Below are positions 94-3,000 of a stretch of DNA of 63,915 nucleotides, one piece after another. Under the pieces are notes generated by a model. That model did not search any database, was not told the DNA's origin, and was given only the letters and a program-made list of their open reading frames with translations. The first letter of the stretch is position 1; every line of letters starts with the position of its first letter. The translations under genes were made by a program, and so were the position numbers. Source of the stretch: Salpingoeca rosetta. Taxonomy: Eukaryota > Protista > Choanoflagellata. The DNA is taken from the NCBI GenBank assembly GCA_033442325.1, contig JAWQFM010000011.1, positions 684,873 through 748,787 of the forward strand, written 5' to 3'.

Positions 94-3000
94 GTTGTGC
101 TGGAGGACGAGTTTAAGCAAGCCTGGGGATGCGGCGTCGTCGTGACTCAGGAGGACATTGACCGCGTTGTCGCGCAGGTGCGACGAAAGCGCACGCGCTG
201 ATCGGCCGGGTTTCATATCGCCCCAGTCTTCCACATCCATCGTTCCATGTTGCCTTGCCTCCAGCCAGTGTATACACATACACACACTTACACTTACACT
301 TGCACGCACACGCACACACACACACACACACACTTACACTTACACGCACCCACACGACACCGATGTGCCACGTGGCAGGTTGTGGAGGAGGAGCGTGCTG
401 TGCTGGAGGAGAACGGCTGGGGATACAAGGCCCGCCTCATCCCAAAGGTCCGCAAGCAGCTCCAGTTTGCGTCCGGAAAGTGAGTTGTTCACTTGCACTC
501 GTGGTGGCGATAACGGTGCGAGGGATGCATGCGTAACACTTGTTTCTGAACATCTGTGTAATTGTGTGTGTGTGTGTGTGTGTGTGTGTGTGTGTGTGTG
601 TGTGTGTGTAATTGTGTGTGTGTGTGTAATTGTGTGTGTGTGTGTGTGTGTGGAGGCAACGGCAAACAACGACACTGATGCGCCACCGCATTCCTTCACG
701 TCGAAACGAACACGCACGCGCCTGCTCACTCTTCTCTCCTCTTCCCATCCCCCCACCCCGAACAGGCTGGTGAACGAGGCACTGGACCGCCAGTTGGTTT
801 CGGTGCTTGGCGAGAACACGGCCGACGCAAAGGCGAAATTCCAGGAGAACATGAAGAAGAAGCGCAAACAGAAGAAGAAGGAGCAGAAGCAAGAGCAGAA
901 GGCCGCCGAGCAGGCTGTCACCCAGCAGCAAGAGGAGAAGGTGAGACACGCACGCCTGCGCTGTGGCATACGGGGAAGTATGTATTTGTGTATGTGTGTA
1001 CTATCAGCACACATGCGGATGGGCTTGTATGCACACACACACACACATTGCTTGACACCTCATTCATGCCCTTGATGAACTGTTTCTCGCACTCACATGT
1101 ACTCTGTCTCTTCATAACCCCCCCACACACACACACTCCTCTCTGTCTCCCTCTCTGTTTCTCTCTCCACAGGCTGAGGAGAAGACGGAGGAACACAAGC
1201 ATGACGGGTGAGCGCGCTCGCTATTGCATGCAGAACTGTGCACAATTCCTCAACCAAGCACTGCCTTCCTTGCTTCTCCACACTAAACCTCATCACCATC
1301 ACTTTCACCAGCAGCAGTCGTACTATCGCCACTGCATCCACTACGCTAGCGCTCACACCAATCCCTTCCACCACCACCCATCTCCATGCACTCAATGCCA
1401 TTGCCACCGCACATGCTGAACCTTGATCACCAGCGGGCAGAAGGTGACGCCCTGGGAGGCATCAGCCGACAAGGAGTTTGACTACAACCGCCTTATTGGT
1501 CAGAGAAGCCACGCGTGTGCATCGGTCGATGTGTGATTGTGTGTGTGTGTGTGTGTGTGTGTGTGTGTGTGTGTGTGCGTGTGTGTGCATGTGGGTCGGT
1601 GTGTGAACCCCGTAACTTCCTGTTCTCTGCCTGTATCCTCCACCATCGCCACGCGCTTTGGTCTAACATTTGCCGTGCGTTGGGTCGGGTTGCAGAGCAC
1701 TTTGGATCCCAGCACCTCACCCAGGAGCACCTTGACAAGTACGATGATGCACACATCTGCCACCGCCCACTACCGTTCGATGCAGTGTCGCTCACATGAC
1801 CATCATGTCACCGACAAACACACACACACACACACTCACACTCACACACTCACACACTCCCTCTCACTCACACACTCACTCACACACTCACACACTCACA
1901 CACACACTCTCTCACATACACACACCAACTTTTCCCTCCTCCGCCGCTTTCCCCTCCTCTGACACGGCTGCACACGTGCTTACAGGATTGCTGCACTCGG
2001 CATTCCCGTCCACCACTTCCTCAAGCGGTTCGAGAGCGTGTGTGTGTGTGTGTGTGTGTGTGTGTGTGTGTGTGTGTGTGTGTGTGTGTTGTGTGTTTTC
2101 TTGTGTGATGAATGCACAGTTGCGATCTTATTTCTGATTTGCGTGCACGGATATCGCATTCACACACATGTGTATGGACAGCAACATCTTCTTCTCCCAC
2201 CGCGACTTTGACACCGTCCTCGAGAAGAAAGCAAAGGGCGAGCCCATCTTCCTCTACACCGGCAGAGGTATCTCAAAGATAACGCAGCACACGCACACAC
2301 ACATGCACACACACATACACACACTCACTCACGCACACACACACACACGTGCACACGCACACGAACAAGCACATGCACACGCACATGCACACACACGCAC
2401 GCACCACTGCAACTCACCTCCGTTCTCTCGTGTGCTCCTCCTCCTCGTCGTTGTGACGACAGGACCGTCCTCGCAGGCCATGCATCTCGGCCATCTCATC
2501 CCCTTTCTCTTTACCAAGTACGTCCCCCCCCCACACACACACACATTCATTCATTCATTCATGACGCTCATACTGGCCCACACACTGTCGCACCCTTTTA
2601 CATCCACCCACCTCCGTGTCCAACCCCCTTTTCTCTCTTTATTCATGCCCACCGCGCCACCGCCACCGCGCACCAGGTACCTTCAGGAGGCGTTTGACCT
2701 TCCGCTTGTGATCCAGATGACAGATGACGAGAAGTTTCTGTTCAAGCGCAACCTCACCCTGGACGACGATCCGGAGACCGGAGTTGCCGCGTACGTGTGC
2801 ACTACCGCTTGTTCACCACTTGTCTTGGCGCACGCGCGCATAGCCTCGCTCACTTTCGCACGCTCGCTCACACGCACTCACTCACTCTCACGCTCACGCT
2901 CACACTCACCCTGACGCACCATCTTGCTTCCTCTCTCTCTCTCATATCCGTGTCACCCTGCAGGCTGTGCCGCGAGAATGTCAAGGACATTATTGCTGTT

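Follow-up and report, generated by a model that had tools for sequence, protein, structure and literature searches.

A glutaminyl-tRNA-synthetase-type N-terminal domain on the cytosolic tryptophanyl-tRNA synthetase of Salpingoeca rosetta and related choanoflagellates

The DNA analysed here (the window) is a 63,915-nucleotide stretch of the choanoflagellate Salpingoeca rosetta (NCBI GenBank assembly GCA_033442325.1, contig JAWQFM010000011.1, positions 684,873 to 748,787 of the forward strand), in which positions 94-5468 of the + strand comprise the 3' five-sixths of the gene for the cytosolic tryptophanyl-tRNA synthetase (TrpRS) of this organism. The encoded enzyme is built of an N-terminal domain (NTD, or head) of the type found on eukaryotic glutaminyl-tRNA synthetase (GlnRS), a Lys-rich linker and a TrpRS core. 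Taken as a whole, the data are best explained by a three-part protein of ~630 residues whose NTD probably serves as a tRNA-binding arm. Appended domains are a route by which eukaryotic synthetases have gained tRNA affinity, complex membership and moonlighting roles, and the TrpRS appendages listed so far are the WHEP domain of animals and the AlaX-like domain of Plasmodium. The duplicated GlnRS head described here, carried on a class Ic dimer and conserved in the closest living relatives of animals, is a third.

The gene was read over window 1-7000 as 19 short exons that start with E1 at position 94 and end in the stop codon TAG (5466-5468). Its 18 introns, of 112-322 nt, are all GT..AG, no internal stop interrupts the spliced frame (checked by script), and the spliced product of 524 aa is identical to residues 23-546 of a public S. 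rosetta protein of 546 aa (PTSG_04448, here P0001; UniRef name 'Tryptophan--tRNA ligase, cytoplasmic'). Searches were carried out exon by exon and then with P0001:23-546 as a stand-in for the joined model, the equality of the two being established with a local script. RNA evidence was drawn from two stranded RNA-seq read runs and from contigs of two further runs, over window 60-3100 with repeats skipped. Junctions 177/379, 479/766, 1207/1434, 1498/1696, 1738/1986, 2267/2463 and 2790/2964 are supported by RNA, and loose read ends support 940/1173 (found also by contig arithmetic), 2027/2182 and 3052/3375; junctions after E11, and that from an upstream exon C (below) to E1, rest on the public protein, orthologues and phase. 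In each of the two contig runs a single transcript contig covers E1 through E11 and further, read depth is alike on upstream and core exons, and neither an alternative junction nor an isoform without the NTD was seen in RNA reads of window 60-3100. Because contigs and junctions span both E1-E5 and the core, the upstream exons are part of the TrpRS mRNA.

A preliminary description of this DNA, made from the letters alone, had placed exons 94-1207 on the TrpRS transcript, and the RNA contigs and junctions, together with a relative's locus in which the boundary lies within a single exon (below), agree with it. The two joints that it had named for checking are also seen, 1207/1434 by junction reads and 940/1173 by a loose end and contig arithmetic, and the upstream peptide that it quoted is exactly what E1-E3 encode. 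Its span for the fused portion, 94-1497, holds real exons but falls short at the 5' end: an acceptor site, and not a start codon, lies at position 94, and only the second subdomain and the hinge of the NTD lie within the window. Both transcript contigs reach past window 94 on the 5' side, by 382 and 398 nt, and E1 is therefore not the first exon.

Within the window (all exons on the + strand), E1 (94-177) runs from the end of the first NTD subdomain across the hinge into the tail subdomain, and was assigned from its PF04558 match, its identity to the organism's own GlnRS and joint 177/379. The Gly-Cys-Gly codons of the GxG hinge lie at 127-135, in columns invariant among 17 aligned TrpRS that correspond to G112-V113-G114 of yeast Gln4. 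Tail-subdomain helices are encoded by E2 (379-479; joints 177/379 and 479/766, and the alignment of P0001:23-160 to human GlnRS), including, at 466-468, a Phe codon at the site of a conserved Trp (yeast W160, 'LKWADGK'; alignment column 'LPFAsGK'). E3 (766-940; joint 479/766 and a weak PF04557 match) encodes the last tail-subdomain helix and then Lys-rich linker, E4 (1173-1207; a loose end at 941 reads into it, and joint 1207/1434) encodes linker, and E5 (1434-1498; joints 1207/1434 and 1498/1696, and core alignment A1) encodes the linker end and the start of the TrpRS core.

The GlnRS-type identity of the NTD, which the preliminary description had proposed, is upheld by profile and pairwise searches. 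P0001:23-546 matches PF04558 at 31.6 bits (Pfam gathering cut-off 28.6; E=2e-7; profile positions 102-161), and P0001:23-160 aligns with human GlnRS residues 107-224 at E=9e-6 (phmmer against PDB). Taken singly, E1 has PF04558 as its top match (profile positions 102-125, E=0.0017, 18.8 bits, under the cut-off) and E3 has PF04557 (profile positions 2-55, E=0.032), the two matches being colinear. With the corresponding exon of S. rosetta's own GlnRS, E1 shares 45% identity (E=1e-5); E2 and E3 found no match among the own-GlnRS exons by BLASTP, nor did E3 in PDB by phmmer; the shared motif (VR..LQ.F/WA..K.V..E.D.Q....LG) is split at the E2/E3 boundary. The orthologue from Microstomoeca (P0002) matches PF04558 at 106 bits over profile positions 6-161, and in a fresh scan every one of the 17 aligned TrpRS matched PF04558. 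A profile built from the 17 N-terminal regions found residues 2-196 of human GlnRS (4R3Z/4YE6; E=3e-37), yeast Gln4 (2e-27 and, for 3TL4, 7e-26) and the GatE tail (2.6e-5). An AlphaFold2 model of P0002:1-205 (pLDDT 93.7, 11 helices) has two helical subdomains, a helical bundle and a four-helix tail, which superpose on solved GlnRS NTDs; its top Foldseek matches are human GlnRS (4YE6, 4YE9) and yeast Gln4 (3TL4), with TM 0.64-0.70 and probability 1.00, followed by GatB, a transamidosome chain and YqeY. These profile and model matches settle homology and fold for the family, and for S. rosetta by alignment. The hinge glycines (G-C-G in S. rosetta) are the sole invariant NTD residues across the 17 TrpRS, between-species identity of the NTD is 23-64%, and complete open reading frames (ORFs) have no stops or truncations in it. 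The linker, of ~55 residues, is Lys-rich, with 11-17 K+R in 16 of the 17 sequences and 16 K+R in 54 residues in S. rosetta.

The 5' part of the gene was recovered upstream of the window, which is directly preceded by a 1399-base N run. The Microstomoeca protein was used in a six-frame search and found contig C11:679306-679419, 5.5 kb upstream, as a match to its residues 37-73 at 59% identity. In the upstream stretch (C11:677873-685472, here L004) three phase-compatible exons were located, 5.2 kb from E1: exon A (L004 1440-1540, ARKHTQEPFNAEIGKVIFDFASKVKLTTSEALR), which is the genome match to the Microstomoeca protein; exon B (L004 1647-1711, LLVAYVFRTDAEKLATPEQLS), with 60% identity to Microstomoeca residues 73-92; and exon C (L004 1898-1935, AAIKFVNSKPADA), letter-identical to the corresponding sequence on L010, a metagenome contig of a close relative (below). 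Single upstream exons of L004 and L010 gave no match in Pfam, being too short. Together exons A-C contribute 204 nt in phase with E1. Of the observed transcript, ~180-190 nt then remain to hold a first coding exon and the 5' untranslated region, which fits a protein of ~630 aa.

The scaffold segment that separates exon C from E1 contains an (AC)n tract, two N runs and coding sequence on the minus strand (the N runs of L004 are at 851-1139, 2833-3620 and 5602-7000). L004 1-720 is near-identical to L004 4888-5601, microsatellite lengths included, with only the last ~110 bases diverging, and exons A-C lie between the two copies of this duplicated ~700-bp stretch. Probably the assembly contains one locus twice, with its pieces placed in the wrong order and falsely joined within the (AC)n tract; the true intron from C to E1 is probably ~200-250 nt (160 nt in L010). 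The first exon of PTSG_04448, by which that model gets across the break, supplies 22 residues (MIEIVWAEENDFVASVAECKHN) from L004 5405-5470. It lies inside the duplicated stretch, is unlike any orthologue and is an artefact of prediction, concealing ~104 true N-terminal residues; by eye, the duplicated stretch looks like a minus-strand, aminotransferase-like coding exon. The public model has a spurious start because exons A-C lie 5.2 kb upstream in a misassembled scaffold, and the practical point for users of PTSG_04448 is that it is wrong at its 5' end through local misassembly.

The core is that of an ordinary eukaryotic cytosolic class Ic TrpRS: P0001:23-546 matches PF00579 at 61.2 bits (cut-off 21.1) and carries HIGH-type (E9) and KMSKS-type (KMSSS, E16) motifs. 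None of the 17 NTD-bearing TrpRS gave a WHEP match (PF00458). When the 55-Mb genome was searched in six frames with P0002, 14 matches were obtained, all on contig C11, 13 within the span of the gene in the window and one at upstream exon A, and other PF00579 loci, on C14 and C7, were not matched. With all matches within one gene, this is apparently the sole cytosolic TrpRS, in a search that scores best candidates only and that a very divergent copy could escape. The S. rosetta GlnRS gene, on contig C3, keeps its own N-terminal domain (PF04558 at 55 bits, PF04557 at 81.8 bits), a point that the preliminary description had left to be checked, and is the only gene found in a genome-wide PF04557 scan. 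Since GlnRS still has its NTD, the TrpRS head is an extra copy, acquired by duplication rather than transfer. In the GlnRS gene (L008 1441-1749, on C3) a tail helix and a Lys-rich linker (KKPVKTKVKDKKPKAEKKKK) precede the catalytic core, parallel to the TrpRS linker.

The same architecture was found in 11 named craspedid choanoflagellates, in every named one recovered: Microstomoeca roanoka, Hartaetosiga gracilis, H. balthica, Barroeca monosierra, Choanoeca flexa, C. perplexa, Salpingoeca punica, S. infusionum, Codosiga hollandica, Monosiga brevicollis and S. rosetta. The path to these sequences ran through E18, with which a metagenome scan found L010; this contig has clear orthologues of E1 and E2, three more exons upstream of them, and one stop-free exon of >440 codons that runs from the last NTD helix via the linker through almost the whole TrpRS core. 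Used as a word-search query, this long exon returned P0001 and a series of proteins 550-717 aa long; most are complete ORFs from transcriptomes, and PF04558 and PF00579 matches are precomputed for the series. Full-length choanoflagellate orthologues, of 615-640 aa, carry the whole domain. The NTD is also present on P0026 and on a second group, P0027, P0052, P0063 and P0116 (Logan, JGI, MMETSP). E3 found no relative in a metagenome scan and no match in a representative-sequence search, the latter being uninformative (a 58-aa query, half of it low-complexity, and an S. rosetta protein that is evidently no representative). A word search with the mechanical ORF at window 158-1072, scored on E3 alone, was blank, as the 546-aa public protein slightly exceeds the 534-aa length limit that applies to this query. 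A word search with the P0002 NTD returned four near relatives only and does not delimit the range of the fusion outside choanoflagellates. In a core-only TrpRS tree the NTD holders all cluster together (SH-aLRT 98), separate from animal, plant, stramenopile and WHEP-bearing sequences; as this is an unrooted tree from a quick search on core columns, with sequences from a similarity-ranked list, a single origin is compatible with the data but not proven. The fusion predates the divergence of the sampled craspedid choanoflagellates and arose by duplication of a GlnRS-type NTD.

A role for the NTD is suggested by yeast Gln4, in which a nearly invariant G-V-G hinge, packed on a Trp, links the NTD subdomains, and in which deletion of the NTD raises the Km for tRNA 30-fold and the hinge mutation G112P raises it 10-fold (PMC3333875). 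By analogy, the TrpRS head would, on balance, be a general tRNA-binding arm that works in cis. The two subdomains would fold shut on the tRNA about the conserved GxG hinge, the basic Lys-rich tether would add electrostatic affinity for tRNA, and the joint effect of head and tether would be a lower Km for tRNA-Trp in the TrpRS dimer, as the GlnRS NTD lowers that for tRNA-Gln in yeast. Binding of tRNA by the head may be largely identity-blind. The preliminary description had offered either a tRNA clamp or docking to a multisynthetase complex, and the tRNA-binding half appears to be the better supported.

Several observations weigh against this explanation of the S. rosetta enzyme. PF04557 (region 2), one of two Pfam families that the preliminary description had named for checking, stays below its cut-off of 25.1 bits, at 11.7-15.4 bits for the window product or E3, and it is PF04558 that passes; the recognisable part of PF04557 is confined to its first 55-59 profile positions, that is, the last NTD helix, and none of the 17 full-length TrpRS matches it at E<=0.01. 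The residue that partners the hinge is Phe rather than Trp in most of the 17 sequences, S. rosetta included. The net charge of the NTD is acidic to neutral (-9 to +2), whereas the surface of the Gln4 NTD is described as positively charged (PMC3333875); with a non-basic NTD, the linker would have to supply most of the charge attraction. According to one review, the human multisynthetase complex is stabilised by the GlnRS NTD, a protein-binding role (PMC8319005). Finally, the structure model is that of the Microstomoeca orthologue rather than of the S. rosetta protein, and the first ~36 residues of the latter are unrecovered.

Among other explanations, the one that survives best, itself unlikely, is that the NTD chiefly serves protein docking and links TrpRS to a multisynthetase complex of choanoflagellates or to another partner. 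It would accord with a domain that is not basic and with the reported loose association of TrpRS with the Trypanosoma brucei complex (PMC4394549), but GlnRS is reported to join its complex via the catalytic core, touching ArgRS and p43 (PMC4394549), a trypanosomatid asparaginyl-tRNA synthetase (AsnRS) bearing this NTD was not among the members found in the T. brucei complex (PMC8319005), and conservation here falls on hinge glycines linked to tRNA affinity and not on a surface patch. Quite unlikely is a regulatory or non-translational NTD with little kinetic effect, which might gate the active site as the WHEP domain of human TrpRS does, sense uncharged tRNA or bind other RNA. Appended domains of vertebrate TrpRS do have non-canonical functions (PMC4284789), and the long flexible linker would let the NTD reach back to the core; against this, tRNA binding is the only measured role in the domain family, the NTD is kept in free-living unicellular species on an apparently sole cytosolic TrpRS, and reads of window 60-3100 contain no isoform that lacks it. 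The lost or weak PF04557 match, the Trp-to-Phe replacement and the acidic domain could also mark a decaying, functionless relic, but this is highly improbable for a domain of full length with pLDDT 93.7 and invariant hinge glycines that is retained in every sampled choanoflagellate. That the upstream exons are a separate gene, or the fusion a gene-prediction artefact, was tested and rejected and has next to no probability: the first exon of the public model is truly an artefact and a break in the assembly lies just upstream of the window, but junction reads and single contigs join E1-E5 to the core, L010 has an uninterrupted exon across the NTD-core boundary, and complete transcriptome ORFs of 615-640 aa from independent species have the same layout.

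The TrpRS head is most closely comparable to the NTD of eukaryotic GlnRS (yeast Gln4 1-187, 3TL4/4H3S; human 4YE6/4R3Z), to which it is homologous over its whole length and with which it shares the two-subdomain helical fold, the GxG hinge, the N-terminal position and a Lys-rich linker to the core. It differs in being carried on a class Ic dimeric TrpRS and not on a class Ib monomeric GlnRS, in an unrecognisable PF04557, in the replacement of the hinge Trp by Phe and in an acidic to neutral net charge. A published precedent for a GlnRS-type NTD on another synthetase is the trypanosomatid AsnRS, with a ~235-aa N-terminal extension homologous to the GlnRS head, which trypanosomatid GlnRS is without (PMC8319005), and in the ESM Atlas an AsnRS cluster with PF04558 is commonest in Euglenozoa. 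The AsnRS host is a class II enzyme and its head was relocated from GlnRS, whereas the choanoflagellate TrpRS head is a duplication in a different lineage. The WHEP domain (WHEP-TRS, PF00458) is likewise an N-terminal, helical, lineage-specific appendage of cytosolic TrpRS, in vertebrates and other animals, but it has an unrelated and much smaller helix-turn-helix fold, and WHEP-bearing TrpRS lie in the other half of the core tree. The helical and the tail domain of GatB/GatE, and YqeY, are distant homologues or structural relatives of the head that contact tRNA; similarity to them is much weaker and, unlike the TrpRS head, they belong to amidotransferases or stand free. The YqeY-like domain of Deinococcus GlnRS is a further such relative but is C-terminal (PMC1865053), as opposed to the N-terminal head of TrpRS.

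Full-text literature searches found no paper describing a TrpRS with a GlnRS-type head, and the reviews of holozoan synthetase appendages that were consulted make no mention of one. The finding is not wholly new, as PF04558 is already tagged automatically on the public protein and the cassette-like head has the published precedent above. Together with trypanosomatid AsnRS, the choanoflagellate TrpRS makes the GatB-related 'tRNA sensor' a portable module that is not specific to GlnRS. The TrpRS head also offers a natural test of whether the module reads tRNA shape or tRNA-Gln identity, and S. rosetta is genetically tractable. A wider scenario, which we regard as speculative and unlikely, is that the GlnRS-type NTD was ancestral on TrpRS at the animal stem or earlier and was lost or replaced by WHEP in animals, that heads are interchangeable cassettes, and that the choanoflagellate head also ties TrpRS into a multisynthetase assembly of which animal TrpRS is not part.

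Some further features were noted among the related proteins. The group of P0027, P0052, P0063 and P0116, a deep sister group of the choanoflagellate NTD-bearing TrpRS, from marine samples, has an extra conserved segment (LLTKVALE.DLDVG..L..F.G) between linker and core, and the contig of P0063 also bears a GH3 glycosidase on the opposite strand. P0026 / P0121 (EukProt transcriptome) is an NTD-bearing TrpRS with a C-terminal tail of ~60 residues. The 17 aligned proteins gave a single weak RIIa match (PKA regulatory-subunit dimerisation/docking; E=0.007), whose bearer the scan leaves unnamed; the C-terminal tail of P0026 / P0121 is probably the source of this match. Two other protist TrpRS, L012 163-2403 (metagenome contig Ga0302130_1016770; an Ala/Lys-rich protein of 746 aa) and P0017, have N-terminal extensions of ~340-430 residues without a Pfam match, and these appendages differ from both WHEP and the GlnRS head.

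The remaining exons of the S. rosetta gene, all on the + strand and equal to P0001, encode the TrpRS core. They are E6 (1696-1738; RNA joints), E7 (1986-2027; joint 1738/1986 and a loose end at 2181), E8 (2182-2267; joint 2267/2463), E9 with the class I HIGH-type motif (2463-2517; contig pieces and invariant columns in alignment A1), E10 (2677-2790; joint 2790/2964), E11 (2964-3052; a loose end at 3053 reads into E12), E12 (3375-3467; outside read coverage), E13 (3622-3667), E14 (3883-3943), E15 (4237-4321), E16 with the KMSKS-type motif KMSSS (4542-4633; invariant K-M-S columns in A1), E17 (4746-4815), E18 (4992-5152; the query that found the relative's locus L010) and E19 with the stop TAG 5466-5468 (5391-5468). 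In linker exon E3, part of the RNA reads have G>C at window 883 (6/16 and 3/30 in the two runs), which could be a strain polymorphism. Low read coverage in the opposite orientation (first mate on +) was seen at window 774-977, only over E3, and may stem from library leakage or from weak antisense transcription. Much of intron 11 is taken up by a ~170-bp (CAT)n tract (window 3180-3350), with long His/Ser/Ile runs in the mechanical ORFs, and (AC)n and (GT)n tracts are present in most introns of the TrpRS gene.

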